Below are positions 3,251-55,491 of a DNA stretch of 64,000 nucleotides, piece by piece. Position 1 is the first letter of the stretch. Each line of letters begins with the position of its first letter. Source of the DNA: Macrostomum lignano. Lineage: Eukaryota. The stretch lies in the NCBI GenBank assembly GCA_002269645.1, contig NIVC01002158.1:124001-188000 (forward strand), written 5' to 3'. A program made the translations under genes and the position numbers. Under the pieces are notes generated by a model, which saw nothing but the letters and a program-made list of their open reading frames with translations, was not told the DNA's origin and did no database searches.

Positions 3251-3779
3251 TCCCCTTTTTCTCTCCTCTCTTCTCATCTCCTCACCTCTCTCCTTTTCTC
3301 TCTCTCATCACCTTTTATCACCTCACCTCTCTCCTCTCCTCTCCTCTGGTCTCCTCACCTCCTCACCTCTCTCCTCTCCTCTCATCTCCCGTTTCCTCTC
3401 CATTCTCTTCTCCCTTCTCTCCTCTCCTTTTTTATCTCTCTTCTCGTCTACTCTCTTCTCCTTTACTTCTTCGCCTCTCCTTTCTCCTGCGCTCGTATCT
3501 TCTCTATCTATCCTCTCTCCCTATAGCCCGCAGTCATCAGGGACTCCTGGGCACGCGTTTCGCTTAGGGGGGGGGGGGCAGCGAGGCGGACCCAGAAGGG
3601 CAGTCATGCGCTGTTCTCAATCTGGCCCTTGAGGTAAATGTTTGCTGACCCCTGGACTAAAAGCACAACGCTTAGGCACATCAGATAAAAACTGTAGTGG
3701 AATGGGATTGAGAACAACATGAACTATTATATCAGCCGGTACCCAAAGCTTCCAAGACTAAGAAAAGCCAAAGCCGAAA

Positions 3780-11000: not shown

Positions 11001-14000
11001 AGCGCCGCAGGCACTCATTCTAGCTCCGCAGGCACTAATTCTAGCTCCGCAGGCACTAATTCTAGCTCCGCAGGCACTCATTTTAGCGCCGCAGGCACTC
11101 ATTCTAGCTCCGCAGGCACTAATTCTAGCTCCGCAGGCACTAATTTTAGCGCCGCAGGCACTCATTTTAGCTCCGCAGGCACTAATTTTAGCGCCGCAGG
11201 CACTCATTTTAGCTCCGCAGGCACTCATTTTAGCTCCGCAGGCACTCATTTTAGCTCCGCAGGCACTCATTTTAGCTCCGCAGGCACTCATTCTAGCGCC
11301 GCAGGCACTCATTCTAGCGCCGCAGGCACTCATTTTAGCGCCGCAGGCACTCATTTTAGCGCCACAGGCACTCATTCTAGCGCCACAGGCACTCATTCTA
11401 GCGCCGCAGGCACTCATTCTAGCTCCGCAGGCACTCATTTTAGCGCCGCAGGCACTCATTCTAGCTCCGCAGGCACTCATTTTAGCGCCGCAGGCACTCA
11501 TTCTAGCGCCGCAGGCACTCATTCTAGCTCCGCAGGCACTCATTTTAGCGCCGCAGGCACTCATTCTAGCTCCGCAGGCACTCATTTTAGCGCCGCAGGC
11601 ACTCATTCTAGCTCCGCAGGCACTCATTTTAGCGCCGCAGGCACTCATTCTAGCTCCGCAGGCACTCATTTTAGCGCCGCAGGCACTCATTTTAGCGCCG
11701 CAGGCACTCATTCTAGCGCCGCAGGCACTCATTCTAGCGCCGCAGGCACTCATTCTAGCTCCGCAGGCACTCATTCTAGCGCCGCAGGCACTCATTTTAG
11801 CGCCACAGGCACTCATTTTAGCGCCGCAGGCACTCATTTTAGCGCCGCAGGCACTTATTTTAGCTCCGCAGGCACTCATTTTAGCGCCGCAGGCACTCAT
11901 TTTAGCGCCGCAGGTGCTATATTTTAGCGCCCTGAAACAAAATTATTTATTTCAACTACGAGTCACATGGTAGGGTGGGAGGGAGACTTAGCATTGTCAT
12001 GCCTCCTCCCATTGCTTTTTAGCGACGCCCCTGCTACTTAATTTCTATTTTTGTCTTTCGTAATTTGTATCTTATGTACAGTATCAAATATTTCTTTATC
12101 AATTGTCAAAAATTGAGTAATCTATAACTCCAGTTTAAGGTATGAGGTTCATGCAAAATAATTTGCTCTGGTACTGTTAGCTCTGACTTTTGCCATTCAA
12201 TAGTGTAGTCATGCCAATGCAATATTTGCATTGATCTCCGCTCAACCCCCACTTAGTCCTGTAGCTTAGTCCACGCAAATCCCCGTGCGCGCAGGTGTTT
12301 AAAGTTTTCTGCCACTCAGGTCCTCGGGTAGCCCCTTACCCTTACCCTGGATTTCTGAGTAGAAAGGAAATCGAAACAGAAAGAAAAACGATTGCAGACG
12401 GCACCCAATATCGATTATTAACTACAGCTAGGCTGAGCAAAGCTGTGCACAGGGCATATTGTGTGCTGCAAGCGGAATGGCGCCATGTAATACTTTAGCG
12501 TCCCAAGTGCGCGTCTGCAGTCTGCTAACTGTGTACTTTTATGCATATGCAGTCACTTGTAATACTACGTGCTATATTTTTATATGGTACATATTTTGTT
12601 CGTTGTTTTAAGCATTTGTATCTGATATGATTACCAAATATGAACTATGAAAACTATGAAAAATAACATGGAAATCAACATACAAAGAAACCAGGATTGC
12701 CCCTAACTGTACAAAACTGTACAAAAGTTAAAATTTCTTGAAATTTTGGTCATTCAGAATTTTTTCAAACTTCAGCAAAGTTGAATATATTTTTGTGTTT
12801 TGTGTTTTTTCTGTGTTTTTTCTGTATGAGTTCAAAATTACGCCCACATACTTGTATTTTCAACTCATACAAAAGCAATGCTTCTATAAAAAATAGTTTT
12901 TCTACCTAGATATGCGTCTATCCTACTTTTAGTAAGCATTCTAGTTTTTTACGTTTTTTGTTAAATTTGCATTCAAATCTTATTAGTTATATTTTAAATC
13001 AATCGATCTATCATCAACAGGTGACCAAGCTGGACCGCGACCCAGCCTCCGGCAATGCCCTGCAGGAGATCAGCTTCTGGCTCAATCTGGAGCGTGCCCT
13101 ATTTAAAATCCAAGAGAAACGGGAGAGCATCGAGGTGACGCTCACGCTTGACATTCTCAAGCATGCCAAGCGATTCCATGCCACCGTGTCGTTTGACTCC
13201 GACACCGGCCTGAAGTCGGCTCTGGGCGTTGTCAACGATTACAATCCGCTGATGAAGGATTTCCCGTTAAATGAGCTGCTGTCAGCTACTGAACTGGACA
13301 AGATCAAGCAGGCTGTGGTTGCCATCTTTGGCCACCTGAAGAAGATCCGATCAACCAAGTATCCGATACAGCGCGCTCTCCGTCTCATCGAAGCCATCTC
13401 GCGCGATCTGAGCAACCAGCTGCTCAAAGTGCTCGGCACGCGACGTCTGATGCACATTCAACATGACGAATTCGAAGAGATCATGACCGCCTGCTTCGAC
13501 GTGTTCACGTCTTGGGATGACGAATACGACAAGCTGCAAGGCCTGCTGCGAGATTTGGTTAAGAAGAAGCGCGAAGAGATGATGAAGACTGTGTGGCGTA
13601 TTAATCCTGCGCATAAGCGGCTGCAGACTAGGTTGGATCAGATGCGCAAGTTCCGGCATCAGCATGAACAGCTGAGACAGGTGTGTTTGATTATATATCT
13701 TATGATGCTTTATTTAGGCAATGACTCATATCTCATTGAGTAAGGTTACTGTGACAAGAATTGCTAAAGAGTCATTGCACACCAAGCACTACCGACTCTG
13801 GGGCGACTGTGGAGTCACGACAGCATCACGTGAGCTGTGGAGTCATAAAAGAATTGCGAAAAAGGTGGCACAAGAGTTAGCGCTTAACTTTCTACTAACT
13901 CAAGTAGACCAAATAAACAAATCGGTTAGCAACTCGGTGATTCTTCAGCGACTCTAGCGGGCCTTATCAGATACTCGTACAACTATACGGCCCCAGGGTC

Positions 14001-17000
14001 ATTATAGAAGCACCCCTGCTAGAGTAGTTTCACAGTCGCAGACAATACACATGTTCCAAATTGACAACTAGGTAACTGTTACAGGCGATTTGTAACCTGA
14101 CATCTCGTTTTATTGGGTAGACTAGAGTCATTTTCTATACTTAGCCTGTGATACTTGCAACGACTCCAGGGCGACACCTTCTTGGTCTAGGTACCGTTTT
14201 TTTAATTAGAGCTGTTCACCGATATTACAGAGATTTGGAGACGCGCCTTAAAGTGACAGTCGACCTCGACCAAAAAATTCTTCGAATTTGTCTATCTCTG
14301 TGCAATTCTAATAACTTTAGGCTAATTTCTGTGAAATACTAACTATTTTCACTACCCCCAACCTCTAGGTTATCGTTCGCGTGCTTCGCCCGCGCGGCCC
14401 ATCGAAACTCGAAGCGGCCGCCGCTGCCGCTGGTGCCGGAGCCGAAGATGCCGGAGGCGACGCGAGCCCCGTGCAAGACGGCGCCATTCCCGAGACGGCC
14501 GATTCCAACGCATTCGAAGAGGTCAATCTAGCCTACGAGATTGTGAAAGAGGTCGACTGCTTGGACGTGTCCAAGGAGGGCACGACGCTGTGGGACGCGG
14601 CGATCAGGCGATACGAGGAGCGCATCGATCGGGTTGAGGCTCGAATCACCACCCGACTGCGCGATCTGCTCGGCACGGCCAAGAATGCCAACGAGATGTT
14701 CCGCATCTTCAGCCGATTCAACGCCCTGCTGGTGCGGCCGCACATTCGCGGCGCTATTCGCGAGTACCAGACCCAGCTGATTCAGCGCGTGAAAGACGAT
14801 ATTGAGAAATTGCACACCAAATTCAAGGAGCAGTACTCGGACACCACCGCCTGTAAGATGAGCAGGGTTAGAGACATCCCGCCTGTTGCCGGCTCCATCA
14901 TCTGGGCTAGGCAGATTGAGCGCCAGTTGAATGCCTACTTGAAACGGGTTGAAGATGTGCTTGGCAAAGGCTGGGAGCATCATCTTGAAGGCCAGCAGTT
15001 GAAGAATGAAGGCGACAGTTTCAAAGCTAAGCTGAACACCACTGAGCTATTTGAGCAGTGGTCGCAGAACATCAACCAAAAGCAGCTGTCCATGACTGGC
15101 AAGATCTTCAGCGTTGAAAGCGTCAAGAAGCAGGCCGGTGGCGGCGGCACTCTGTATCGTCTGAGGGTGAACTTCCAGCCAGAGGTAATCACGCTGTCTA
15201 AGGAGGCCAGGAACATGCGCTGGCTCGGATTCCGAGTGCCGCTTGGCATTGTGAACAAGGCGCATCAGGCTAACCAGCTCTATCCTTATGCCGTCTCCCT
15301 GTGCGAGTCCGTCAAGTCCTACCAGAGCACCTGCGCTCGAATCGACTCCGAGCACGGCCAGGACGTCAATCTGCTGTGCGCCGGTCTCAGGCGTGAAGTC
15401 CAGTTGATCATCATGGAAGGCGCCACATTGGTGTGGGAGTCCTACCGACTCGATCCATTCGTTCACAAACTGGCCGATTCCGTTAACAATTACCAGGAGA
15501 AAACTGACGATCTGTTGGCCATTACTCGCCAGATTGATGCTGAGATGGTTTCCCTAGACACTTGTGGCTTCTCCAAGCAGAACTTTACTGAAGTGATCAA
15601 TAAGATTCAGAAGCAGATCGACGCTCTGAGTCTGCACGAATATGCCAATTTGTCGCTGTGGGTATCCAAGCTGGACAAAGCTGTTGAGACCAAGTTAGCC
15701 GTTCGGCTGGAGTCCGCGCTAAAGGCCTGGATTAGGATTCTGAAGGGCAACGTGAATCCAGAAGATGACGAAGTGGACGCTACAGTTGGCAAGCCTCAGA
15801 TTAAGAAAATTGTGCACGAATTGCGCATCACTAATCAGCAGATGCACCTGCACCCGAGTCTGGAAGCTGCTCAGCAGGAGCTCATGCATCAGCTGACACT
15901 GTGGCAAGAGAACGTGTCCAGCTTGCCTCGCCTGAGCCACCAGCGCTACCAGGTCGGCCCAGCCCAGGTTGTACAGCAGGAACGCGATCGGACCTACGCC
16001 TCGGTGTTCAGCCGCCTGTCCAATGCCGGCGAAGTGCTTGAGACTGCTCACGCTGAGATACAGAAAATTGTCCAAGAGGCCGAGGTGTACGTCACTACGT
16101 GGACTCGTTACCAGGCTCTCTGGGATCTGCAGCCGGATCAGGTGTATCCTAAACTGGGCAACAATCCTGGCGTTTGGATGAACGTGCTCGACGAGATCAA
16201 AGCCATGCGCAAGACTTTCGACGTTGCGGAGACGCAGAAAGAATTCGGACCGTTAGTGATCCTATTCGGCAAGGTGCAGGGCAAGGTGTCCATGAAATAC
16301 GACACCTGGCACAAGGATGTGCTGGGTAAGTTCGGTAACCTGATGGCTACTCAGATGAACACGCTGTTTAGCGACATCTCCAAGGCGCGCAACAATCTGG
16401 AGCAGCAGCCTGGCGCCTCGCCCGGCGCCAGCACCCAGGACGCTGTGGCGCTGATCACCTATTCGCAGAGTCTCAAGCGCAAAATGAAAACCTGGGAGAA
16501 GACGGTAGAGCAGTGCCAGGCTGGGCAAGCTCTGCTATTCCGCGATCGATTCCAGTTCCCGTCTGGCTGGCTTGACAGCGACCAGGTCACTGGCGAGTGG
16601 TCCGCGCTCACCGACATTCTCAACCGCAAGACTCAGGCCATATCTGGCCAGGTGGCTTCTCTTCAGGTCAAGATTGTAGCCGAGGACCGGCTTATTGAAG
16701 CTAAGACTTCGGACCTGCTTGCTGAATGGGAAAAGCAGAAGCCTGTGGAAGGCGACTGCAAGCCGGATGAAGCGTTGCAGACTCTCGCTATTCTGGAAGG
16801 CAAGCTAGGCCGACTGCAGGAGGAACGCCGCAACGTCCAGACAGCCAAGGAGGCGCTCGAACTGTCCGAGGGAGGCCCGCCGCCAAGCGAAGAGCGCGTG
16901 AAAGTGGCCACAGAGGAGCTGGCCGATCTCAAGGCCGTGTGGACCTCGCTGGGCAGTGTGCACGATGATTTGAGCGGCCTGCGCGACTCGCCATGGCAGA

Positions 17001-20000
17001 CTGTGCAGCCAAGGAAGCTGCGCCAGGACTTGGACGCTCTGGGCGCCCGGCTGAAGGAGCTGCCGGCCAGATTCCGCCAATACGCCGCCTACACTCACTT
17101 GAAAGGTCGCCTTAGCAGTCTAACCAAGGCTAACATGCTGGTTACCGAGCTCAAATCTGAGGCTTTGAAGGAGCGTCATTGGAAAACTCTGCAGAAGCAG
17201 CTTGGCGTCTCTTGGAACATGAATGACCTGTCACTCGGCCAGCTGTGGGATCTTGACCTGCAGAGGAATGAGACTGTCATTCGCGATGTACTAGCCGTTG
17301 CTCAGGGCGAGAAGGCCCTCGAAGAATTCCTGCGCCAGGTAACCGAACTTTGGAAAGGCTACGAGCTCGAGCTGGTCAGCTTCCAGAACAAGTGCCGCCT
17401 CATCCGCGGCTGGGACGATCTGTTCAGCAAGGTCAAGGAGCACATGGCCAGTCTGAACGCTATGAAACTGTCGCCATACTTTAAACAGTTCGAAGAGGAA
17501 GCCCTAGCCTGGGAGGACCGATTGAACCGCATCAACGCTCTGTTCGACTGCTGGATCGATGTGCAGCGCCGCTGGGTGTACCTGGAGGGCATCTTCTCCG
17601 GCTCTGCCGATATCAAAACTCTGCTACCAGTTGAGTCGCAGCGCTTCGCCAGCGTCAGCTCAGAATTCTTAGGCCTAATGAAGAAGGTTGCCAAGTCGCC
17701 ATTGATTATGGATGTGCTCAACATACCGAATGCTCAGAAGCAGCTGGAGAGACTGGCCGATCTGCTGGCTAAAATCCAGAAATCCCTTGGCGAATACCTT
17801 GAGCGCCAGCGAGCCTCATTTGCCAGATTTTACTTCGTTGGCGACGAAGACCTGCTGGAGATTATCGGCAACAGCAAGAATGTCCACCGGCTGCAGAAGC
17901 ACTTCAAGAAGATGTTTGCCGGAGTGCACACGCTCAAGCTTGACGAGGAAGCCACCACAGTGTTTGGCTTGTGCTCCAAAGAGGGCGAAGAGGTGCCGTT
18001 TGTAACGCCGGTCTCAATCAAGGATAATCCACGGATTAACGATTGGCTAACAATGGTTGAGAAGGAGATGCGCGTAACCCTAGCTAAGCTGCTGGCTAAA
18101 GCCACTCTCGGACTCAAAGATGTAACCGCTAGTTCAGAGAATCGCGATGAAAAGTTCATGGAGTGGGCGGACACTTATCAGGCTCAGCTGGTGATCCTGG
18201 CTGCTCAGGTCATTTGGTCCGAGAGTGTCGAGGCTGCTCTTGCATCCATTGACAAGGCTGGCGGCAAAGGGGACCCAGATATGGCGCCGCTTGAGGATGT
18301 GCTCAAGTCTGTTGAAGGCACTCTCAATCTGCTAGCCGACTCCGTGCTCAAGGAGCAACCGCCTGTGCGTAGAAAGAAACTGGAACAGCTTATTATTGAG
18401 TACGTTCACCAGAGAGACGTCACCCGTCAGCTCATTACCGACAAGATTGGCTCCAACAAGTCGTTCGAATGGCTGGCCCAGATGCGATTCTACTTCGATC
18501 CTAAGCAGACTGATCCGCTCAAGCAGCTGATTATTCGCATTGCCAATGCCAGCTTCAACTACGGCTTCGAGTATCTGGGCGTGGCCGAGCGCCTGGTGCA
18601 GACGCCGCTCACCGATCGTTGCTACCTCACCATGACGCAGGCGCTCGAAGGCCGTCTCGGCGGCTCGCCATTCGGTCCTGCCGGCACAGGAAAGACGGAA
18701 TCGGTCAAGGCGCTGGGCAATCAGCTGGGCCGTTTCGTGTTGGTCTTCAACTGCGATGAAACCTTCGACTTCCAGGCTATGGGCCGCATCTTTGTCGGCC
18801 TGTGCCAGGTGGGCGCCTGGGGCTGCTTCGACGAGTTCAACCGGCTGGAGGAGCGCATGCTGTCGGCCGTGTCCCAGCAGATCCAGGGCATCCAGATGGC
18901 GCTGCGCGAATACCTTACAGGTGATAGCAGTGTGAAGCCTAAAGCTGAGCTCCTTGGCCGCGAAGTTCTGGTGCACCAGGACATGGCCGTGTTCATCACC
19001 ATGAATCCCGGCTACGCTGGCCGGTCGAATCTGCCGGACAATCTGAAGAAGCTGTTCCGCTCCCTGGCCATGACTCAGCCTGATAGGCAGCTCATTGCTC
19101 AGGTCATGCTGTACTCACAAGGCTTCCGCACCGCAGAGAAGCTGGCCGCCAAGGTGGTGCCATTTTTCAAACTGTGCGCCGAGCAGCTCTCCGCCCAGAG
19201 TCACTACGACTTCGGTCTGCGCGCATTAAAGAGCGTGCTCACTAGCGCTGGCAATGTGAAGCGCGACCGAATCCAGCAGATCAAAGCCTCCGCAGGCGAC
19301 GATTATAACGAAGCGGATGTGGCCTCGCGACTGCCCGAACAGGAGATTCTTATCCAATCGCTGATGGAGACAATGGTGCCCAAGCTGGTTGCCGAGGACA
19401 TTCCCCTGCTGTTCTCCTTGCTATCTGACGTGTTCCCTGGCATCGAGTACGTGCCAGCCGAGATGTCCGCTCTGCGTGCCGAAATTCGCAAGGTGTGCGA
19501 AGAGATGCACCTGGTCTACGGCGAGTCCGGGGACGAAGGCGAACGCTGGGTAGAGAAAGTGCTGCAGGTGTACCAGATCACCAATATCCAGCACGGCCTG
19601 ATGCTGGTTGGCCCCAGCGGCTCCGGCAAGACCATGGCCTGGCGAGTGCTGCTCAAAGCGCTCGAACGTCTGGAAGGCATCGAAGGCGTTGCTCACGTCA
19701 TCGATCCGAAATCCATCAGCAAGGACAACCTGTACGGCTTCATGGACCCCAACACGCGCGAATGGTTCGACGGTATCTTCACCCACACTCTCCGCAAGAT
19801 TGTTGACAGCCTTCGCGGCGAGGCCGGCAAGCGTCAGTGGATCATCTTCGACGGCGATGTGGATCCCGAATGGGTGGAGAATCTCAACTCGGTGCTGGAC
19901 GACAACAAGCTGCTCACCCTGCCCAATGGTGAGCGTCTGGGCATTCCACCGAATGTTCGAATCATGTTCGAAGTACAGGACCTGAAGTACGCCACCCTGG

Positions 20001-23000
20001 CCACCGTGTCCCGCTGTGGCATGGTCTGGTTCTCCGACGAAGTGCTCACCACCACCATGGTGATGCACAACTACCTGAGCTCGCTGCGCAATGTCCCGGT
20101 TGACGAGTCCGACGAAGGCTCCGTGCTGGACGTGCAGCGAAAGCTGGCGGCCGTCTGGGAGGCGCAGCTGCAGTCGGACGGCATCGTGATCCGCTGCCTT
20201 GACGAGGCCGCCAAGCTGGACCACATCATGGACTTCAGCCGGATGCGCGCCCTGGCCTCTCTGTTCTCCATGCTCAACCAGAGCGCCAGGAATGTCATCG
20301 CTTACAATGCCTCGCATCCGGACTTCCCCATGTCTGACGAGCAGATCGAGCTGTACGCCAGCAAGACTATCGTTGTGTCAGTGCTGTGGGCCATGTCCGG
20401 CGATGGCAAGCTGAAAATCCGCGAACAGCTTGGCGAATTCATTCGCGGAGTGAGCACCATCCCGCTGCCGCCCGGCAACTCGCCAATTATCGACTATGAG
20501 GTCACCATCCAGGGCGAATGGGCGCCTTGGGGTAACAAGGTGCCGCAGATGGAGGTTGAATCGCACAAGATCACGGCTACTGATGTGGTCATACCGACTC
20601 TGGACACTGTTAGACACGAGTGCCTGCTGAGCGGCTGGCTGGCCGAGCACCGGCCTGTGTTGCTGTGCGGCCCGCCCGGCTCCGGCAAGACCATGACCCT
20701 GTTCGCCGCTCTGCGCTCTCTGCCCGACATGGAAGTTGTCGGTCTGAACTTCTCCAGCGCTACCACGCCAGAGCTGCTGTTGAAATCGTTCGATCAGTAC
20801 TGCGAGTACAAGAAGACGCCCAACGGTTTGGTGCTGGCTCCGCAGCAGCTCAACAAATGGCTCGTGTTCTTCTGCGACGAGATCAACCTGCCTGACGAGG
20901 ACTCATACGGTACTCAACGCGTCATTTCTTTCATCCGCCAGATGGTTGAGCACGGCGGCTTTCATCGGTGCACTCCCGGCGATCTGCAGTGGGTGACGCT
21001 CGAACGGGTGCAGTTTGTCGGCGCCTGCAACCCGCCAACCGACCCGGGCCGCAAGCCGCTGTCAGCTCGGTTCATGCGCCACGTGCCGCTAGTCTACGTT
21101 GACTATCCCGGACGCACTTCGCTGACTCAGATCTACGGCTCATTCAACCGGGCCATGCTGCGCCAGCTGCCTCCGCTGCGCCCCTACGCCGATCCCATCA
21201 CCAACGCCATGGTTGACTTCTTCCTGATGTCGCAGGAGCAATTCACAGTGGACCAGCAGCCGCACTATGTGTACAGTCCGCGCGAGATGACTCGCTGGGT
21301 GCGCGGAATTCACGAGGCCCTGACTCAGGTGGACTCGCTACCAATTGAAGGCCTGGTTAGAATCTGGGCGCACGAGGCATTGCGACTGTTCCAAGATCGT
21401 CTGGTGGAAGATGGCGAAAGGAAATGGACCGATGACACTATTGACCAGGTGGGCTTGCGTGCTGGAGTATGATTGAGTCTGTGAAACATTGCGTTTAGGT
21501 GATGGCAGTCTAGTTACTTTAGAGTATGTTGTCACATTATCTTGGTCGCTTTTGATTCGTGATTGTTATGTGATAGTTGCTTTAGATAGTCACATGATAG
21601 AATCACTTTAGATGGTCACGTGATAGGGTCACTTTTGGATAGTCACGTGACAGTTACTTTAAATGGTCACGAGATAGGCACTTTAGATAGTCACGTGATA
21701 GCCACTTTAGATGGTCACGTGATATGCTTTAAATGGTCACGTGATAGGGTCACTTTTGGATAGTCACATGACAGTTACTTTAAATGGTCACGAGATAGGC
21801 ACTTTAGATAGTCACGTGATAGCCACTTTAGATGGTCACGTGATAGCCACTTTAGATGGTCACGTGATAGGCTTTAAATGGTCACGTGATAGGGTCACTT
21901 TTGGATAGTCACGTGACAGTTACTTTAAATGGTCACGAGATAGGCACTTTAGATAGTCACGTGATAGCCACTTTAGATGGTCACGTGATAGCCACTTTAG
22001 ATGGTCACGTGATAGGCTTTAAATGGTCACGTGATAGGGTCACTTTTGGATAGTCACGTGACAGTTACTTTAAATGGTCACGAGATAGGCACTTTAGATA
22101 GTCACTTGATAGGCAGTTTAGATGGTCACGTGATAGGCACTCTAGATGGTCACGTGATATGCACTGTAAGTTGCCCTTAATGATCGCATCAATGGCCAGA
22201 ATTTCGAATGTAAATGTCTTTTCAAACCCCCCCCCCCCCAGGTGGCCGACAAGCACTTCCCGGGCATCAACAAGCAAGAGGCCCTCCGCCGTCCAATCCT
22301 ATTCAGCAATTGGCTCACCAAAGAGTACGGACCCGTTGAACGGGAGCCTCTGCGCGACTATGTCCGCGCCAGACTGAAGGTCTTCTACGAGGAGGAGCTC
22401 GACGTGCCGCTGGTGCTGTTCAACCAGGTGCTTGAGCACGTGCTGCGCATTGACCGGGTATTCCGCCAGCCGCAGGGTCACCTGCTGCTGATTGGAGTTA
22501 GCGGTGCTGGCAAGACCACCCTGTCCCGCTTTGTCAGCTGGATTAACGGGCTGTCCGTGTTCCAGGTGAGAGGTCTGCTCACTGCTGTGGGGGAATTTCT
22601 CTAGTGTTGATAAATAGGGGAATTACTATGTAGTGCTGATGGATCGGGGAATTACTATATAGTGCTGATGGATCGGGGAATTACTATATAGTGCTGATGG
22701 ATCAGGGAATTACTATATTGTGCTGATGGATCAGGGAATTACTATATAGTGCTGATGGATCAGGGAATTACTATATAGTGCTGATGGATCAGGGAATTAC
22801 TATATTGTGCTGATGGATCAGGGAATTACTATATAGTGCTGATGGATCAGGGAATTACTATATAGTGCTGATGGATCAGGGAATTACTATATAGTGCTGA
22901 TGGATGGGGGAATTACTATATTGCTTATACTAAGGGGATTCCCTATGGGCTATGGTGCTAATTAACGAGAGGAATTACTATAGTGATGATAATCCTATAA

Positions 23001-26000
23001 AATACTTCACCTGTCAATCCCCAGGTGAAAGTGCACAACAAATACACCGGCGAAGATTTCGACGAAGATCTGCGCTCAGTGCTGCGCCGTACCGGCTGCA
23101 AAGGCGAGAAAGTCACCTTCATCATGGACGAGTCCAATGTGAAGGACAGCAGCTTCTTGGAGCGGATGAACACCTTGCTGGCTAATGGCGAGGTGCCCGG
23201 TCTGTTCGAAGGTGACGAGTTCCAGACGCTCATGACTCAGTGCAAAGAGGGCGCCGCCCGCGACGGCCTGATGCTGGACTCGCACGAGGAGCTGTACCGC
23301 TGGTTCACTCAGCAGATTTGCCGCAATCTGCACGTTGTGTTCACTATGAATCCCAGCTCTGACGGCCTGAAGGACAGGGCGTCCACGTCTCCTGCTCTGT
23401 TCAATCGGTGTGTGCTCAACTGGTTTGGCGACTGGTCGCTTGAGGCCTACTTCCAGGTGATTGATTTTGTCTTGTTCATCACTTCTGTACCAGAATACCT
23501 AGTGATCTAGTGATCCTAGATTATCGTTTGAGTGATCAGATCCCTGTCAGTGACAAGATCCCCATTTCAGTGATCAGATCCCTGTCAGTGACAAGATCCC
23601 CATTTCAGTGATCAGATCCCTGTCAGTGACAAGATCCCCATTTCAGTGATCAGATCCCTGTCAGTGACAAGATCCCCATTTCAGTGATCAGATCCCTGTC
23701 AGTGACAAGATCCCCATTTCAGTGACCAGATCCCTATTTCAGTGTGACCAGATCCCCATTTCAGTGTGACCAGATCCCCATTTCAGTGTGACCAGATCCC
23801 CATTTCAGTGTGACCAGATCCCCATTTCAGTGTGACCAGATCCCCATTTCAGTGTGACCAGATCCCCATTTCAGTGTGACCAGATCCCCATTTCAGTGTG
23901 ACCAGATCCCCATTTCAGTGTGACCAGATCCCCATTTCAGTGTGACCAGATCCCCATTTCAGTGTGACCAGATCCCTAGTTCTAGGGACCATCCCGCTCT
24001 AGTGACCCTTTATTCATAAATCACGCAATGCGTTTCGCTGACCCTCGCACAGGTTGGCAAGGAGTTCACCGAGAGGGTGGACCTGGACAAAGCGGACTAC
24101 TCTGTGCCGGACTACCCGCCGATGGCCCTGGAAGGCCTCCCATCGCGGCCCAACCACCGAGAGATGGTCAACAACGCCTTCGTGTTCGTGCACCAGACCC
24201 TGCACCAGGCCAACCAGCGGGTCGCCAAGCGCGGCGGCAGAGTGGCAGCCATCACGCCGCGGCACTTTTTGGACTTCATTCATCACTACGTGAAGCTGAC
24301 CAATGAGAAGCGGGCCGACCTTGAAGAGCAGCAGCTGCATCTGAACAAGGGTCTGACTAAAATACGCGAGACAGTGGAACAGGTGGAGGTGATGCAGTCG
24401 TCTCTCAGTCAGAAGCGCAGCGAACTGGAGCGAATGAACGAGCAGGCCAATCAGAAGCTGAAACAGATGGTGCAGGATCAACAGGTGGCCGAGGAGAGCA
24501 AGAAGAAGGGCGAGATGCTGCAGAAGAGTCTGGCCGAGAAAGAGATCTTCATCGCTGAGAAGACCAAGGAGGTCACGGCCGAGCTTAGTCAGGTGGAGCC
24601 AGCCGTGTCAGAGGCCAAGCAGGGTGAGTTGCTTTGTTTTAGTTTTTGCTTGCTCAAATATTCGACTGTTTCATATCAGTTATGATTATGAGATCTCTAG
24701 TTCGGAATGTGGGATGTGTGGTTCGGGATGTGGGATGTGCTGTTCGGGACTTGGGATGTGCGGTTTAGGATTGAGGATGTGTTGTTTGGAATTTGGAATA
24801 TGGGGTTTGGGATGTGGGATGTGCAGTTTGGGATGTGGGATGTGCGGTTTTGGATTGAGGATGTGTTGTTTGGAATTTGGAATATGGGGTTTGGGATGTG
24901 GGATGTGCGGTTTTGGATTTGGGATGAGCGGTTTGGGATGTGGGATGTGCAGTTTGGGATTTGGGATGAGCGGTTTGGGATTTGGGATGAGTGGTTTGGG
25001 GTTTGGGATGTGGGATGTGCGGTTTTGGATTTGGGATGAGCGATTTGGGATTTAGAGTGTGCGGTTTTGGATTTGGGATGTGCGCTTTGGGGTTTGGGAT
25101 GTGGGATGTGCAGTTTGGGATTTGGGATATGCGGTTTGGGATGTGGGATGTGCGGTTTGGGATTTAGTATGTGCAGTTTGGGGATGTGGGATGTAATTAG
25201 AATCTGTAGTGTACAACTAGAAACAGGTGTTGGATTTTACTCACCATACTACTTAAGTCTTGGTATTCTGGCTCACTTAATTTAATTTTATAATTATAAA
25301 ACTCGATGGCTGAATCGACCGCTGCCAAGCTCCATGCATACCACTGGCATTACCGCAACTTCCCCATCCGCTATGCACTACTTTCGCTGCTATCTAGCTG
25401 TGAACGCGGTGACCCGTCAGCAGCTGGTGGAAGTCCGCAGCCTGCCAAACCCGCCACCGCTAGTGAAGCTGGCCCTGGAGTCAGTGTGCACCATGCTAGG
25501 CGAGCCTACTCAAGACTGGAAGTCCATCCGAACCATTCTAATGCGAGACAATTTCATATCTCAGCTGCTCAATTATCAGACTGAAGATCTCAGGTGAGTC
25601 AGCGGCTCAATTCGTTGCTTTGCTAATCCGATTCGCCCCCTCCCCCTCCCCATACTTTCCTTAAATCCGCCGCTATCCAGCCGTTGAGGGCATCAAGCGG
25701 AAGGATATTCAGGAGATCAAAGCGATGAAGAACCCGCCGCCGGCGGTGAAAATGGCCGTGGAATCCATCTGCCTACTGTTGGGAGAGAAGTCCTCAGATT
25801 GGAAGCAGATTCAAGGTGTAATTGTTAAAGACACCTTTGTGCCAAGTATTGTTAATTATAAGACACTGGAGATGCCGTAAGTTCAATCAGAGAGCGAACT
25901 CCTCTATACAGTTAAACAGGTGGCCGAGTTTCCTTATCCTATTTATTATGGGTCAATAAGTGACGCACTTCGATTTTTTCGATTTCAAAAACCGCTTCAA

Positions 26001-29000
26001 AGATTCAAAATATTTATTAAAAACCTGAAAACTACTTAACTTGTTAAGTAGTATATTTGCGTTCAAGATACTGGTATTCTCGACAGTTATCTCGTAATTG
26101 TATTCAGCTGGATTTTTGCATCTCAAGCAGTACGAAGCTACTAAAAGTAGTATAAGTTGAGTAGGCTATAAATTATTTATAATTTCGTAAAGAAAAAATA
26201 TTTGCTAGCCGCCAAATTCGCAATATCAATCAGTAGTATTCCAATCAGTAGTACGATCGCATATAATCTTTCCTACACCTGGCATTGTCTTTATTATTAA
26301 GCTGGTTAGCTTAATTAATTACCTCCATCTTTATATTGGTGATCAAGGATCAACATGCTTTTGCTTTCACATTTTCTCAAGTTATCAAATACAAATCGCT
26401 TTAACAAAAAAACTCCAAAAATTAATTACAAAATGCAGCGACTCCATCCGCGAGACCATGAAGAAGAAGTACCTGTCCAATCCCGACTACAACTTCGAGA
26501 AAGTCAACCGGGCCAGCATAGCCTGCGGCCCCATGGTGAAGTGGGCCATCGCCCAGATCAGCTACGCCGAGATGCTGCAGAAGGTTGAGCCGCTCCGTGC
26601 CGAGCTCAAAGCCCTGGAGGTTGAGGCCGGATCCAACAGGCGGAATGCTGAGGAATGCCAAGCCGAGATCAGCCGCCTGGAGAAGAGCATCGCCAAGTAC
26701 AAGGAGGAATACGCGGCACTGATTAGCCAGGCTCAGGCTATCAAATCCGATCTGGCCTCGGTTGAAGCCAAGGTCAGCCGGTCCGTTGCTCTGCTGTCCT
26801 CGCTTAGCAACGAGAAGAAGCGCTGGGAGAGTGGCTCAGATGCTTTCAAAGCTCAGATGGAGACTATTGTTGGCGACTGCCTGCTCAGCTCCGCTTTCAT
26901 GGCCTATGCTGGCTACTTTGATCAGCACATGAGAACTACTCTGTTCACCACTTGGTCGCATCATCTGCAGCAGGCTAATATCAAGTACAGGAGCGACCTG
27001 GCTAGGGTTGAGGTGAGCACCTTGTTATTGATTCTCCTCAACAACTTACTTTCTTCCCAATTCCCAGATCTGCAGCTTCTCCCAGATCCCAGATCCCCAT
27101 AGACTGGGCAGCTACTCCCAGATCCCAGATCCCCATAGACTGGGCAGCTTCTCCCAGATCCCCATAGACTGGGCAGCTTCTCCCAGATCCCCATAGACTG
27201 GGCAGCTTCTTCCAGATCCCCATAGACTGGGCAGCTTCTCCCAGATCCCCATAGACTGGGCAGCTTCTCCCAGATCCCCATAGACTGGGCAGCTTCTCCC
27301 AGATCCCCATAGACTGGGCAGCTTCTCCCAGATCCCCATAGACTGGGCAGCTTCTCCCAGATCCCCATAGACTGGGCAGCTTCTTCCAGATCTCCATAGA
27401 CTGGGCAGCTTCTCCCAGATCCCCATAGACTGGGCAGCTTCTCCCAGATCCCCATAGACTGGGCAGCTTCTCCCAGATCCCAGATCCCCATAGACTGGGC
27501 AGCTTCTCCCAGATCCCCATAGACTGGGCAGCTTCTCCCAGATCCCCATAGACTGGGCAGCTTCTCCCAGATCCCCATAGACTGGGCAGCTTCTCCCAGA
27601 TCCCAGATCCCCATAGACTGGGCAGCTTCTCCCAGATCCCAGATCCCCATAGACTGGGCAGCTTCTCCCAGATCCCCATAGACGGGCAGCTTCTCCCAGA
27701 TCCCAGATCCCCATAGACTGGGCACCCCTAGTGCCTTTTACGTTGCAGTAATGTTGACATTCAACCCTTGTGAAATGTTGCCTGAAGCTCCCAAATGACG
27801 CGCCTGGCAATGTTGCACAACATTGACATGTCAGCATTGCAAAATCAAATTGAAATCAACGTTCTTGCAACCTTGAAGCATATCCCAATCCCAGACGGGT
27901 CCTTTTATATGCTAACCCCTAGTGCCATTTATGTTGCGGGAATGTTGTACAAATGTTGACGCGCAACAAGTGGTAAACGTTGCTAGAAGCGACCGTTTGT
28001 CGCGCAAAACAACGTTGCAGAATGGTTGACGCATCAACATTGCAAAATCAACATACATCAACATCTGTGCAACATGTAGTCGTCGTGTCTACTATTAGTA
28101 GTATCTAATGTATGTGTATTATTCTATATACTACATATATTTCGTATCACTTTCATTCTATAATATACGACGACTCTACTATTACACTTGCTTATGTCTT
28201 TCTTTCGCATGCCATGCATTAATTTTGGATTGTTGTTAAGGAACTTCTACCGGTAGTAACACTGACTACATAGTAAAAAATCTGTAGCTTGCACACAGGT
28301 TCAAAAATCGAGACTCCTACATCTTGAAATAATACGAAAATACGGCCATGACTTAGCATTTGCTAAAAAGAATAAGTAAAATAGCAAAAAACGTTTCGAT
28401 TTAAAGGTCTGCGAAGATTAGCTAATGAGCACCATTAATTTTTTTTGTTTTATCGTAAACACATCAGATCAGACGGTTACCATTATAGTAGGTCAAGAAA
28501 GCAATAAAAATATTTACTACATTAGATGCGCATGATGTGTATCTTTGTGTGTGACTGCAAGCTGCAACCTGCAGTGTTTCTTTTAATGAATAAAAAAGTT
28601 AGCAGGAAAATAAGAGATTCGCAAAACTATTATTAATGGCAACTGCTATTTGCATGCTGGCAAAACAGACATGTCGTTCAGAAAAGATGCAAAGATAACT
28701 AGAGATCTGATGGCGATGATTAAAAACAGCTATAGCCTCCAAAGAGATTCACCTAACCTAGAGCGAGTCTATACTGATCTTTGTTCTTAGAACTTAGAAC
28801 AACTAGTTTTATTAAGCCACCAATCCCGTGAAGTCTGAACTCCTATTTACTCAAAGTTGAGTAAGTGTACAACCGTCAACGTTGATGACTTCAAATCGTT
28901 GGCCGCCATTGTCATTATCTTCGCTGCTGTCGTGAGCGCCCTCGTCGTCAGAACTGCTGTCGCTCTCGCCACTTGCATCGCCGTCAGTGTTCATGTCTGC

Positions 29001-32000
29001 GCCGTCACCTCCGCTTTGCCGAGTGCTCCTTGGGCCTGCAGCCGAGTTCCGAAGTTCTCCAGTCGGACGCTGTGCGGACTGCTGTGAGCACCTTTTTCGG
29101 CGGAACCGAGTGCCTGAGTGGCGCAGATGTTCGCCCACCGCGGATTCAATGGCCTCGCCTTTGGCGTCTTTGTGAACACTCCACACGACGTCTAAAAGTA
29201 GGTAAATACTGCCCATTAGTTTTGCTTACCCAAAGTAGATTAGTATCTAGATATGGACGTACAGAATTGATATATATTTAACTAAGCAGCTTAAATACAC
29301 ATTTTATCATAGAAGAGACAAAATCCTAAGCACCATTATGTTGCTTACTTTTGATAAAAGGCAGCAGGCCAGTTGACTCAAAGCAATACTTGGAAACGCC
29401 AGAACGCTTGGCACCACGGAGACTGAACTGATGAGCAAGCTTGTCATCCATGATGTGGTATAAGATATTAGCGACGGACTTCATTAGAGTTTTGCTGGTA
29501 AGCCGCTTGAAGAACAGAAACTGAAATGTGTGGAATGAATTCGAATGGTAGACTAGAAATTGAATTAATAAACTACAAGACATTACACATTAATAGTCAT
29601 GTCTTGTAATGTGTTATATTCTCTCATAAAATACATGCGGCAGTTAAGCGGCATCCAGTCGCTTTTGTAAATCGTGCAATGATAAAAATCATACAAAATA
29701 CTAGCACTCACTGCATCATTTAAGCAGCCTCGATCACTTGTTAGTCGTGTGGCCCACTCAGTCAGTTTATCGACTTCGGTAAATGGCAGATCTTGAAGTA
29801 TAGGCCTGTCGGTTGGCTGTTGGCCGTGCTGGGCATTGCTGGAGTTTGCACCTGTACTACGAGACGAAGAGTTCTGCAGAGCAAGAAACTGCAGGTGAAA
29901 GTCTTTCACCTCTGTAGCCAGGCCACAAATCGCACCATGCATCGCGCGCTGGGTTGCTAAAATGAAGAAAATTATCGAGAAGATGTATCAGCCAGTCAGG
30001 GATAATAGTCAGTTAGTGACTCAAATAGATTATTCTCTATACAAACCAGATGAACCTCCGAAACGTTAAGTACAAATTAAAAAGTGTAAATCGCAGCAAA
30101 ACTCAGAATCATGCGGAGCTGAATGTTTAATAGTGCATTACGCCATTTTAATTTAAATCGTAACTTTACTTAATTCTGGAAATGAAGAGCTCGGATTAGA
30201 ACTTCTAAATTTTCTTATATCAGCGCCTCAGTAGCGAAAGAAATTTTTTTAGCTGGCTTACTTTCAATCCGCCGCACGGCTGTCACTAGAAAGTCCAATA
30301 TGTCTGCACGGCTCGCGTCGTAAACGCCAATCGCAGAGGCCGCGGCAGCTGCAGCAGAAGCAGGATGGTGCTGGATTCCATGCCCCATCGGAGAGGCCGC
30401 GGCAGATGCAGCAGAAGCAGGATGGTGCTGGATTCCATGCCCCATCGGAGAGGCCGCGGCAGATGCAGCAGAAGCAGGATGGTGCTGGATTCCATGCCCC
30501 ATCGGAGAGGCCGCGGCAGATGCAGCAGAAGCAGGATGGTGCTGGATTCCATGCCCCATCGGAGAGGCCGCGGCAGATGCAGCAGAAGCAGGATGGTGCT
30601 GGATTCCATGCCCCATCGGAGAGGCCGCGGCAGATGCAGCAGAAGCAGGATGGTGCTGGATTCCATGCCCCATCGGAGAGGCCGCGGCAGATGCAGCAGA
30701 AGCAGGATGGTGCTGGATTCCATGCCCCATCGGAGAGGCCGCGGCAGATGCAGCAGAAGCAGGATGGTGCTGGATTCCATGCCCCATCGGAGAGGCCGCG
30801 GCAGCTGCAGCAGAAGCAGGATGGTGCTGGATTCCATGCCCCATCGGAGAGGCCGCGGCAGCTGCAGCTAAATTGGTGCTGGTGCTGAAGCTGCCACAAG
30901 AAGACTGTGAAAACGGGCTCAGACTCGATGTAGTAGCATGAACTGCGCTTGCCAAGATGGCTTCATGTTGGATGGAAGCCAAATTCGAACTGCTGCTTAT
31001 TGTCAAAGGTGGCCTCGTGCCATCAGGTTGAAACTTTGGTGGCGCTGACGACTGTCCAGCACTCCGGCTGTTACCCAGTGTAGAGGATTTGCTCTTTGTC
31101 GTTCTCTTTCGGCCGGTTTTTCGAGTCTCAATGTCGAAATTCTCATTGTAATAGTGGTCGACAACTTGAATTCTTCGTGGAGCATCTATATCAGTAGAAT
31201 CAACTTCTCCCCGACTCTCGTACCGCTTCCGCAGGTTGACAGCAGCGGGAAATTGATCTGCATGAAGGGGAATAGACACATGTACATGTACACTATATAA
31301 AATTACATCCTTTATTATTAGCTATGAAAATTCGCTTTCACGTGGGACTTAGTCATCCCACATCTAATTAAACAAGAAAAAATATCAACCCCCCGATGTA
31401 GATAATAGGAGCCACATTGAAGTACTTTTTTCTAATGTATACAAGAAAATAGTACAATAATTGCACTTAAGACTGGCTTCATATGTAATCATAGGCATAT
31501 CATATATAATCTACCTATTTGAAAATAATTCTGCATTAGCACATAAACTCACCTCTCGATCCAATGATGTCGACTTTGTAAGGCAACCAACTATCGTCTG
31601 GGACTGACTTCGACTGGTTTGTCAAGCAAGCCTTGAACTTTTTCAGGGGAGGGCACAAGACGCTGTCGCTGCCCTGAAGCCAGGAACGACGAACGATTTC
31701 AATTTCTTCAGTTTCATTGAAGCGAACAACAACAAATGCATTCAGGTCGTTTAGACTCATTCATAGACTTGGCCCGAATATGCTGAAATAAAAGTTGGAG
31801 GGAAACAAAGCAAAGTTAGAAAAGCTATCGGATCGGAACACATTTTCCTTTATTATTTTATAGTACTATGGGTGAAAACGCAACGCATATATTTCAGAAG
31901 CCTACCTTCACTAAAAATCTGTTAACAAACAGCAAAACCATTTTGCGAAGCAAAGAAAACCATCTAAAAAGGGACTGTCATATATTTCGCATGTCTATGC

Positions 32001-35000
32001 CTAATCATGTCTAGGTCTATATGCGATTGTTGGAAAGAATTTAATATGAAAGCATGAAATTAGTGACAGCGTGAAATGATAGTATGTTCTTCCCACAAAC
32101 ATTTATATTTTCTAATATTACCTGCTTACTCAGTGGGAGTGGCTAAAAATGAAACCAACATTTGCTGAATGAGAAAGCAGCTAGCTAGAAGAAGTCAGAC
32201 AGAGAGTTCATTCAGTTGCTTCCAAACATTTGCAGAGAAATGCTTGATGTGCGTAGAAGCTACGCACAGTCGACCAATGTATGTAAAATAGGGAGAATGC
32301 AGGAACGATTTTTGAGACTTACAAGCATCGCTTTACCATAGAAATCAGTCCATCGTACAGTTACGAGTGAGTTGCTTAAAGTATTGACAACGGAAATGTG
32401 CAGAGACATTGAGTCGAAAGTTTCGTCGTAGAGGGCGGTTTGCTGAATAAATTTCTTGCCAACGAAAATACAACCGACATCAGTAGAAATTATATGAGTG
32501 ACTACAACTGCAAATCCATCTCGAGTTAAAATATAGCAGTCTGGATTAGCAACAGATATATACGTTCCACGCAATACAAGACTAACTTTACGGTAAATAC
32601 CAAATGTCTGAACTCCTTGCAATGAGAAGTCTACATTCGAAGATGCAATTGGACCGGAATATTCAAAAGGCGACTGAATAGAACACATGTGCTTAGGAAA
32701 AAAACCGAGAGTCACATCTCTCTCCAGAATTCGCTTCACAGTCTGCTCGAGAGCAAAACGTGGACTGCGAACAAACTGGGTAATAAAGCGGATAAAATTT
32801 TCGCCCCAAAAGCAACTAAAACTATCCAACGGACCACGTCGACGAACTTCTGAAGGAATATGAATTATTGAATGCACAGTGTACACGATAAACTCGTCAC
32901 CCCAAATAATTGCACATTCATTAACAATGTGCTTTGCCAAATCTTCGGCATAAGAGCAGTACGTTTGACAAACCAAAGGATGCGACAATAGGAAAACAAA
33001 CGAATGCAGAGAAAGAAATAATTGATACACAGATTCAGGGACGTTTCCAGCTAAAACAATTGGCGCCAAGTACAAAATAAACAATCTAAACTCAGTTGCC
33101 TTCCAAAGACCCACGCACTCAATCGACCGTGGCTTTCGTGCAAAATCATGCGGAATGCAAGACGAAATAGAACACAGATCAGCACTTATCTGACGAATAT
33201 TAGGTCCAGATGCTCGATGGGGCAAGCGTCCCTTACCGAGGAATTTTAAACATTTAGGAACAATACCCTCGTATATTAAGTGCATTGGATCCAGAGGAAA
33301 ATCATGAACCATGTCGATGGGCAAACTTAAAAAAGGGCTTGGTAGAAGAACATGATTTGGGTATACATCACCTCTGAAGCCAAAGTCAGTTCGTAGTGCA
33401 GCACTTAGGTCAGAAAATGTCACTCTTCCATTACAAAAGTCCCCTTCAACAGTGCACTTGTCGCAACCAAAGTATCCCCAACATGCTTTTGTTCCTTTTA
33501 CAAAGCTGCGTGCTGGTGAATCGCAGGTAATCATTGAAAGTTTAAAAGGTAATATGAGATCTGACTCTGAAGTGACAGTAGAGACAAATCCATCAGCCAT
33601 CAAATCACGCAATTCAGTAATACAGTCGGCAAGAAAGTCCGAAGCAGAGAGGGGTTTGCCAGTTCCATAGTAAAGCCCGATTATAAAAACAGAATGAGAC
33701 AAATTCGAAACTCTACCCAACACAGGCCACAATGTATAGGTAGTGCTATTGTGCACTTTTGCACCATCAACAAAAAGGTGGAGGTTCAAGGAATCCAGAC
33801 GAGAGCGTGATCCAATATTGCTCAGGAGAAAGTCAAGACCAGCTTTAACGCCAAAATGATAATATCGCCCTGGGTTGACATAGCGAAAAGTAAGCTCCCT
33901 TGGTGTAGTCATTAGTCCACGATAGTCAGCAGCTAGACCAGGAAACTCGTCTTGTAGATTCTGAAGCAAGTAGTTCACGCACGGCACTTCTGGGCCTGTT
34001 GCTTTAACCCAGTCTCGAAGCATGGCCTCGAGTCTCGCACATTGGTTGTCATCAGAATGAAGGGCTGATTCAATCGTTGAAGAAGTCAGGTTTCCTAAAT
34101 GTAAGAAATAAATAGCTAGAGTATTATCAAAAACTATTAAAAAGATTATGCACATACTTGTTGATAAAATCACATTTTTACTCTAAATTTTTGTTTAACT
34201 TTCAAAGTTACAGAAAAAATTTAAGTTAATTTATTTGTAAAGCAGAAATGAATAATGGATGGTGTAAGGTTCATATTCAGTTTAGAGGATCAAGCACACT
34301 AAGATGTCAATAAAAAGTGTTGAAAGCAATTAGGGGTTATTATAAAAAATAGATACATTCAATCTTACCAACATCATCACTAGTCATCTCCTGGTATTCA
34401 AGTTCCATTTGAGACTCTTCTGTGGGCTCAGGAGCAGCATGAATTCCAAGCTCTGCCATAGGCTCAGTTGGCTGTTGACTTGGATCTTCAGTGTGACATG
34501 GGCAATGCAGCATAACTGCAGCTTCCTCGTAGCTTCTCTTAATATGTCGTTGGACTGTTCGCTTACTGGCTCCATGAACAGATGTTGAGGAAAAACCTAG
34601 ACAAATTATAGAGAAATGGATGAAATGAAAGCCTCATAATTACGCCAGCATAATGAAGCCTTCTATGCCTTCAATACCTTGAGCAAGACCTAGCAAGAAA
34701 CTGTCAGTATCAAGATCATACCCTTGATAATGAGTACTCAACATAAGTATATGCTTATTGCAACATATATATAATATAAATTATAGCAAAAAATATGTTT
34801 ATATTACAAATCTAATATACAATCCACAAATTTCCTAAAACTTGCATCTTGTGCTTTAAAGAAAATAATAATTGTTTAACAACATTGCAAGCTTTATTTT
34901 CTCCAAACAGAAGCATTATAGATAAAAAAATTTACTCAAAGTTTTGCCAAAAGCAAAAATAAATCAAGTTGACAATTATCATTATGAACAAATCCCAAAT

Positions 35001-36120
35001 ACACCAAATTCATCATTTAGCATAGCAAACATTTTTATAGGCAAGGTTTGATTTAGGGTCTAATATAGTAGAACTAAAACTAATAAATATAATAAATAAT
35101 AAAACTAATATAGGGTCTTTAGGAGCATATATAAAAATTAACAAATTAGGTTGAATACAAATAGCCAGCATTATATACTTTTAAGCTTGATACTCAAGTC
35201 TCTTGAATTTTGACTAGCACTTCATATCCAACAAATAACTTTTCAATAAATTTTGTTTTATTTAAATTAATTTAGCTATCATTAGCTAGTTATTAAATAT
35301 AACATTTCTTATGAAACAATCTTATACCATAGTCCAGAAGAAGGCATCTTGTACCCCAGAAATTTCTAGGGTACACTCAAGAAATTTAGCATACATTGGC
35401 ATACACAAAAAGTGATTTTCTAAGGCTTTTGGCATATATGTTTAATATTTTTGTGACACACAAAGAATGAAAAGTTATGTTATTAATAATTGTTACAATA
35501 GTTGTCCATGCATACATTACTATAAAATTTGATATAAAATTAATGCAAAACTGAATTCTGTTTTTTATAAGTTAAAAGTCATGATTTTTAACAAAAATGC
35601 ACAAAGTTTACTTTTGTTTTTTTAATATATATAACATTATATAAATATAACTATAACTGTTATTTTTAGTTTTTAGCTCATCTCATTTAAATTAAATATC
35701 TAAATCACCCATCATGTTCCATCACTTATTCCTAGCAATTTAGATGTTTTGTGTAAAGTATTATAAATGGTATATATTGGCATTAAAAGAATGTTGACAG
35801 TTTTTTTGTGGGGCACATATAGTGTTCTGAACTATAGATCTTATACAAAAAATCTATGATTTGCAACACTTTTTATTTATAGTTGAAATTTGCTCTTTAA
35901 TCATTTCTAAGTCTATTTTACATCCAAAATGCAAAAAAACTTATTGATATTTGCAATCTACACTTTAATCTTTATTTTGGCAGTCTTAGTCTTACTTCTT
36001 ATAATAAAGGAATGTTTAGACAAACATTTTATGATATAGAGCAATAGGCCTAATATAGATATATAAATAGACTATACCAAATGGTATATAATTGAGGCAA
36101 ACTTGAACTAAAAATAGTTA

Positions 36121-36159
<39 letters not shown>

Positions 36160-50790: not shown

Positions 50791-50915
50791 AAATAAGACT
50801 ACTTTTATATTCTCAGTAGTATAAGTAGAGAATTAGTTTTTTTAAGCCGATATGTATCGAAAGTATATTTAACGAAGGGTATTTTACTACTAATATATTT
50901 ATGCTATCCAGCGCC

Positions 50916-55345: not shown

Positions 55346-55491
55346 ATAAACACATTTGATTCTCAAATTCCATCAAGAAAGTCGAACTCGTTACTTTTTG
55401 CTTTAATAAAAAATGCATCGTATTTCCGTGACGCACTACTTGCAGTAGGTCTGTATGTGAATTGCAATTTCGCTTCCCGCAGCCAGCCAGC

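Follow-up and report, generated by a model that had tools for sequence, protein, structure and literature searches.

The cytoplasmic dynein-1 heavy chain gene of the flatworm Macrostomum lignano contains two adjacent exons of equal length, here called A and B, which encode diverged versions of the same segment, the core of the microtubule-binding domain (MTBD) that sits on the tip of the dynein stalk. They lie in a stretch of 64,000 nucleotides (assembly GCA_002269645.1, contig NIVC01002158.1, positions 124,001 to 188,000 of the forward strand) that was analysed as a whole and is referred to as the window. Exon anatomy, frame logic, conservation, orthology groups, dynein-1 identity and the predicted fold are all observed, and we conclude, with a probability of roughly 80%, that A and B are a tandem-duplicated, mutually exclusive exon pair of the flatworm cytoplasmic dynein-1 heavy chain gene.

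Anatomy of the exon pair

At least 16 coding exons of the dynein gene are seen in the window, with the N-terminal start undefined (Table 1). Among its parts are a 7.1-kb exon (14369-21469) and a 13.5-kb intron (27013-40554). The exon set is supported by tblastn of the concatenated product of 4499 aa against the window.

Table 1. Positions of the exon pair, its surroundings and its counterparts in other flatworm genomes. A slash marks an exon border; intron bases next to it are in lower case.
Feature	Sequence	Position	Strand	Remarks
Cytoplasmic dynein-1 heavy chain gene	window	7810-49091	+	from open segments, tblastn of the product to the window and PDB matches to DYNC1H1
Constitutive upstream exon (stalk CC1)	window	24053-24623	+	3' end CAGG/gtgagt, donor GTGAGT; leaves 1 base of a split codon
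Exon A, A-type MTBD core (CC1 end, H1-H4)	window	25398-25593	+	196 nt, ..tatctag/CTGTGA...TCTCAG/gtgagt
Intron separating A and B	window	25594-25680	+	87 nt, GTGAGT...CCAG
Exon B, B-type MTBD core	window	25681-25876	+	196 nt, ..tatccag/CCGTTG...GATGCC/gtaagt
Constitutive downstream exon (H5, H6, CC2)	window	26439-27012	+	acceptor ..atgcag/C; 77% identical to L002
Both exons, Protopolystoma xenopodis (Monogenea)	contig L001	A 5790-5985, B 6544-6739		
Both exons	ENA contig L002	A then B		
Both exons, Schistosoma haematobium group	Logan contigs L005-7, L012-14	A then B		32% GC
Both exons	Logan contig L008	A then B		
B only	L003/L004 (ENA)			between the same constitutive exons
B only, taeniid-like	L009-11 (Logan SRR22558375/376/382)			between the same constitutive exons
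21-nt minisatellite GTTTGGGATGTGGGATGTGCG, ~23 copies	window	24700-25194		intron upstream of exon A; context, no assigned role

Both exons are bordered by AG and GT and share the same phases (1 in, 2 out). The first codon of either exon needs one base of the upstream exon and then reads GCT or GCC, Ala either way. At the other end two bases are left over, which together with the first base of the downstream exon give AGC (Ser) in the case of A and CCC (Pro) in the case of B. When the upstream exon is joined to the downstream exon through A or through B, each product translates without stops. As 196 is not divisible by 3, the inclusion of both exons or of neither shifts the frame: with A and B together a stop appears two codons into B (..EDLSR, stop), and with both skipped a stop follows after eight codons (..AKQATPSARP, stop). 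The A and B peptides align without gaps and are 39% identical (25/64). An earlier note on this DNA had described tandem 196-nt exons with these phases and canonical splice sites, ungapped but diverged peptides and a frame that is broken by both or neither, and on all of these points the coordinates, borders, alignment and translations agree with it.

Exon B was matched by the A-containing protein at E=1e-14 (tblastn within the window). This value and the orthologues found elsewhere rule out a chance similarity of open reading frames. When the assembled protein was compared by tblastn with the window, A/B was the sole duplicated exon of the dynein gene.

We propose that one 196-nt exon, either A or B, would be included in each mRNA, and that both or neither would cause a frameshift and an immediate stop. 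Double or skipped transcripts would be non-productive and would probably be cleared by nonsense-mediated decay. The chosen exon would supply the last turn of the stalk helix CC1 and helices H1-H4 of the MTBD, with H5, H6 and CC2 constant, and one gene would thereby give rise to two dynein-1 motors, identical except at the tip that faces the microtubule.

As a general mechanism of exclusivity a steric block is unlikely, since the intron between A and B spans 69-558 nt across species (69 nt in L002, 87 nt in the window, 234 nt in L005, 291 nt in L008 and 558 nt in L001). A search of 1.9 kb for intronic pairings of the docking/selector kind gave 28 inverted repeats, none of them long or clearly above chance, and one of the arms, ACTCACC at 25239, shows no more than the complementarity expected to any GGTGAGT donor. 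The intron ends before A (25383-25397) and before B (25666-25680) share 12/15 bases (ttcgctgctatctag, tccgccgctatccag). This likeness on the acceptor side, which is weaker in other species, may reflect mere pyrimidine-tract composition. No transcript-derived contig across the A/B junctions was found, and the protein searches gave only genomic exon fragments and gene models.

Both exons encode a dynein-1 microtubule-binding domain

The segment encoded by A or B corresponds to residues 3295-3360 of human DYNC1H1, that is, to the end of CC1 and H1-H4, and both spliced versions match human DYNC1H1 3285-3420 over the full length with no gaps. Among the PDB matches, the A isoform scored 198 bits against 3J1T/DYNC1H1, compared with at most 69 bits against axonemal chains and 63 bits against dynein-2. 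The B isoform scored 192 bits against 3J1T, with 184-192 bits for its best matches to the DYNC1H1 MTBD, 58 bits for dynein-2, and at most 64 bits for axonemal chains, or 70.6 bits for a chimera with DYNC1H1 parts.

In AlphaFold2 models, each built with ~20 homologues, the mean predicted local distance difference test score was 89.4 for A and 90.8 for B, and the helix patterns were identical. Both models predict a six-helix bundle on the tip of an antiparallel coiled coil, with CC1 at model residues 2-42, H1 at 46-53, H2 at 60-72, H3 at 80-87, H4 at 92-97 and H5 at 106-117, followed by helices at 124-130 and 134-194 (H6/CC2). In human numbering the helices contributed by the alternative exon are H1 (3301-3308), H2 (3315-3327), H3 (3335-3342) and H4 (3347-3352). 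The alternative exon also provides the last turn of CC1, and the constant downstream exon provides H5, H6 and CC2.

The PDB matches and the models thus agree with the view of the earlier note that the segment is the core of the cytoplasmic dynein MTBD. Its further suggestion that B looks more like axonemal-type MTBDs did not hold, because the dynein-1 scores of B (184-192 bits) far exceed the axonemal ones (~70 bits or less). Moreover, B contains no axonemal insertion (flap) and is ungapped to DYNC1H1, and an axonemal-type MTBD was rejected for this exon. To the canonical, single MTBD of mouse and human DYNC1H1 (3ERR, 3J1T, 6RZB), A and B are 52-56% identical over 64 whole codons (3296-3359), again without gaps. 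While canonical dynein-1 genes have one version of the MTBD, the flatworm gene has two; a non-flatworm dynein-1 locus that served as a control (L016) carried a single MTBD segment.

The exon pair in other flatworms

Besides the window, four other flatworm genomes carry A followed by B, each of 196 nt and with AG/GT borders (Table 1). The label Schistosoma haematobium group was given to one of them from its runs, ERR3012896-908 and ERR5919563, which neighbour the runs ERR3012902 and ERR5919562 listed for Schistosoma curassoni in a preprint. In Protopolystoma, the gene model P0014 (L001 611-6752) fuses a partial A to a partial B via non-homologous junctions. Its two partial MTBD cores are an annotation error caused by the exon pair, which is a trap for genome annotation.

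Other loci contain B only. Here the upstream exon and B are separated by introns of 222 and 370 nt, which hold no remnant of A. The taeniid-like contigs (L009-11) come from runs of a study of livestock parasitic flatworms (Taenia, Echinococcus, Dicrocoelium) and are almost identical to protein P0161 of Hydatigera taeniaeformis, in whose model B is joined to the downstream exon. Judged from these contigs, cytoplasmic dynein-1 of the B-only lineages (the taeniid-like one and another that is cestode-like) must have B as its one MTBD, and since A is missing there, B would be able to serve as the only binding domain.

Searching with exon B alone returned six short genomic reading frames with the B signature, which led to six of the loci described here. 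With a two-row A/B profile as the query, an exhaustive search of representative proteins yielded mainly sequences from fungi, protists and other organisms that are not flatworms, and a single B-type flatworm model, P0153, a WormBase-type gene model of a divergent flatworm with B only. The best matches of the dynein segment of the window in the protein collection were 54-67% identical; the word-index search behind such matches apparently covered proteins of ~0.55-1.7 times the query length, and full-length proteins of Schistosoma, Clonorchis or Echinococcus were not among the matches. A Dibothriocephalus contig (L015) begins downstream of the exon pair and is uninformative on A in that order.

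It is exceedingly improbable that the pair is an assembly artefact or an inserted fragment of a paralogous dynein gene. The repeat-rich window raises the general risk of misassembly, and no specific support for an artefact was found. Against it stand the identical arrangement in five independent assemblies obtained with different technologies, the dynein-1 type of both exons, neither of which belongs to another dynein class, and the flanks, which give matching splice sites and phases.

Age of the duplication and selection on both exons

Exons of the same type resemble each other more closely across species (A versus A 53-75% identity, B versus B 67-83%) than A resembles B (36-47%), and the identity of either type to canonical dynein-1 sequences is 39-67%. 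Exon A of the window is 53-66% identical to its orthologues in L001, L002, L005 and L008, and exon B is 67-77% identical to its orthologues in the same four contigs and in L004 and L009, all of these exons being 196 nt long. In neighbour-joining trees of A exons, B exons and ten canonical sequences, the A exons formed a clade in 95% and the B exons in 99.8% of 1000 bootstraps, and the order of species was largely alike in both. The separate clades with like species order place the duplication before the split of these lineages, and by this criterion it predates the split of monogeneans, trematodes and cestodes.

The constitutive upstream exon is 73-77% identical among cestode, monogenean and schistosome loci, with 92% between two cestode loci. 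The upstream exons of the window and of L002 are 62-67% identical to those of the parasitic loci and 67% identical to each other, and in the exon trees both sequences branch outside the others. These distances and trees suggest that the lineage of the window probably lies outside the sampled parasitic classes, in which case the exon pair would predate Neodermata; as an estimate from distances, this greater age is likewise probable. In the taeniid-like tapeworms, A was lost.

Between orthologues the proportion of synonymous differences (pS) was 0.70-1.0, that is, saturated, and the proportion of non-synonymous differences (pN) was 0.14-0.32 for A and 0.09-0.25 for B. In the comparisons listed for the window, pN was 0.25-0.32 against a pS of 0.73-0.96 for exon A, and 0.14-0.23 against 0.83-1.0 for exon B. 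Saturated synonymous sites together with low non-synonymous change mean that A and B are both under purifying selection. Where the synonymous rate could be estimated, the ratio of non-synonymous to synonymous rates (dN/dS), a measure that the earlier note had suggested, was ~0.09-0.13. Conservation and purifying selection rule out that either exon is a decaying pseudo-exon. The earlier note had also proposed a comparison with other flatworm genomes, four of which are now seen to carry the pair, and it had named two outcomes that would speak against its view, namely that B is decayed or absent in relatives and that the pair is an artefact from a paralogue. Both exons are intact, 196 nt long and under purifying selection in five independent genomes, and the presence of the pair in these five genomes argues against an artefact.

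One could suppose that a single exon, more likely B, is constitutive and that its partner is left over from an old duplication, not yet decayed and either silent or seldom used. A has gone without a trace from the taeniid-like and the other cestode contigs and is therefore dispensable there, it is less conserved than B in both pN and identity, and the gene model P0153 of a divergent flatworm uses only B. Over such a time, however, a neutral relic would be expected to be destroyed, whereas in five lineages with saturated synonymous sites A keeps an open frame, the length of 196 nt, AG/GT borders and a pN far below pS, and it retains canonical MTBD residues such as R3339 and N3346. We therefore regard a relic as very unlikely and a mutually exclusive pair as the better account of these exons.

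Residues that distinguish A from B

Fourteen positions separate all A exons from all B exons. They cluster at the junction of CC1 and H1 and in H1 (human 3297, 3298 and 3302-3305), in the H1-H2 loop (3310, 3311), in H3 (3339) and in the H3-H4 loop (3344, 3346). At 3297 the canonical residue is K (10/10), A exons have N or G and B exons E, L or Q. At 3302 (canonical Q) A has Q or A and B has K or R, and at 3303 (canonical H or N) A has Q and B has D. The canonical L3304 and V3305 are kept in A and replaced in B by I and Q, respectively. At 3311 (canonical A or G) G, P or T is found in A and K or R in B; at 3339 (canonical R) the residues are R in A and Q or L in B; at 3344 (canonical R or K) they are R in A and K in B; and at 3346 (canonical N) they are N in A and D, S or T in B. 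Thus, A retains the canonical state at several microtubule-side positions, including Q3302, V3305, R3339 and N3346, while in B the canonical H3 arginine at 3339 has disappeared and basic residues have been acquired at 3302 and 3311. In the taeniids, B exons still show the B-type states although A is gone. K3297, invariant in the ten canonical dynein-1 sequences compared, has been lost from every A and B exon, and its replacement may predate the duplication. In H1, K3299 of mouse adjoins D427 of beta-tubulin, and H1 and CC1 move upon microtubule binding (PMC6629372). This residue corresponds to human 3301, which is basic in all A and B exons. Redwine et al. 2012 and earlier mutagenesis reportedly identified R3337 and R3342 of mouse as microtubule contacts.

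The net charges of A and B are 1-3 units apart. From the residue states, the A and B motors would present different basic patterns to the microtubule, and because of this their affinity, their processivity or their preference among tubulin variants may differ. Alternatively, both exons may be used while their MTBDs are functionally equivalent, the pair being kept for the regulation of dynein output (productive versus non-productive splicing) or by drift. The sufficiency of B in tapeworms without A, the common predicted fold of the two models and the small difference in net charge are in keeping with this alternative. However, A and B have stayed distinct clades, at 36-47% identity, across very deep divergences, where equivalent copies would be expected to homogenise or one of them to vanish, and the fixed type-specific differences sit on H1 and H3, the microtubule-side helices. 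We consider equivalence unlikely.

We thus favour a mutually exclusive exon pair whose two products differ, and several points weigh against this reading. The use of both exons in mRNA of this species is deduced from their conservation, and a functional difference between A and B from the comparison of residues. Given its faster evolution than that of B and its loss in one lineage, exon A might play a minor part in some species. Finally, a pair predicted in 2011 for Schistosoma mansoni is equated with the present one by its description and by Schistosoma contigs, not by S. mansoni sequence.

Cytoplasmic dynein-1 is usually viewed as a motor with one heavy chain and one MTBD, whose diversity comes from accessory chains and cargo adaptors. 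Going beyond the exon pair itself, we tentatively suggest, at somewhat less than even odds, that a flatworm splice switch kept since before the parasitic classes gives dynein-1 two microtubule-binding surfaces, and that the choice between them depends on cell type or life stage and alters affinity, processivity or the reading of tubulin isotypes or modifications. If this were true, dynein-1 would be naturally tuned at its interface with the track and not through adaptors, and a conserved H1-H4 switch would show a whole phylum varying the motor at that interface. The pair would also offer two MTBD variants shaped by natural selection, with few fixed differences (3302-3305, 3311, 3339, 3344, 3346) for work on affinity and processivity, and the loss of A in taeniid tapeworms would be a natural experiment on which version suffices.

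Other features of the window

Nearly every intron of the dynein gene has its own minisatellite array, with periods of 18-66 nt, up to 62 copies and units that all differ. Arrays lie at 10633-11931, 21580-22165, 22618-22921, 23550-23976, 27087-27704, 30330-30868 and 37595-39006, and further ones at 40964-41417, 41879-42171, 42540-43646, 44800-44984, 45596-45941 and 46880-47254. On both strands they give rise to numerous long reading frames that are spurious. One 66-nt tandem unit occurs at two sites 13 kb apart (46880-47254 and 60488-60936), and the sequence neighbouring it recurs three times, near 46.7, 55.7 and 60.3 kb; the unit and its neighbour resemble a family of dispersed repeats with a satellite of its own. 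Inside the 13.5-kb dynein intron, the minus strand has an open frame of 637 aa (32260-34173), which has no Pfam match and could be a degraded mobile element or due to chance.

The extreme skew in GC and AT over the first 4 kb is explained by a (TCTCC)n microsatellite of 3.1 kb and ~590 copies (416-3481). An open frame on the plus strand (50901-51521), downstream of the dynein gene, contains an Eaf7 domain (Pfam PF07904, E=2e-10) and is probably a homologue of MRG-binding protein/EAF7. At 52782-55361, 54 copies of a 48-nt unit give rise to minus-strand frames of 629-692 aa. A Pfam match to Tsp36_N in these frames covers only ~14 residues and looks spurious.

Relation to known systems

The exon pair had already been predicted in 2011 for Schistosoma mansoni, whose DHC1 gene (SmDHC1) was used as a test case for the prediction of mutually exclusive exons by WebScipio (Pillmann et al. 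2011, PMC3228551); this bears out the remark in the earlier note that such exons had been predicted in DHC1 of parasitic flatworms. As described in the passages on it, the prediction concerns one adjacent pair of exons, equally long and strongly homologous and with a split codon at either end, which was judged mutually exclusive from an alignment of >2000 dyneins (PMC3228551). Kollmar 2016 (PMC5100056) cites the pair as alternative splicing in the dynein motor domain. The gene family and the phylum are the same as here, and the single pair of equal length with split codons matches ours. We take the two pairs as the same because the description fits, because A/B is the only pair in the gene and because it is present in Schistosoma contigs. 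The encoded domain, the phylogenetic spread, the expression and the function are not given in those passages, and full-text literature searches on dynein, mutually exclusive exons, Schistosoma and alternatively spliced MTBDs turned up no study of expression or function. The present analysis adds the assignment to a domain, a wider phylogenetic spread, selection on both copies, the residues by which the two types consistently differ and the finding that taeniid-like tapeworms have lost A.

A comparable switch between two exons is known from helminth COQ-2, in which a conserved mutually exclusive pair alters the core function of the enzyme (Tan et al. 2020, PMC7434440). The gene and its chemistry are unrelated to dynein, and there the choice of exon has been tied experimentally to anaerobic metabolism. 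Closer in kind is the Drosophila gene for muscle myosin heavy chain (Mhc), likewise a single motor gene with tandem homologous exons, one of which is chosen per cluster, so that a piece of the motor is swapped. The alternative exons of Mhc tune motor kinetics. Mhc differs from the flatworm gene in its motor and track (actin), in having several clusters with up to five alternatives, and in that usage and function have been shown experimentally; by analogy, it could be the best guide to how the A/B pair works.

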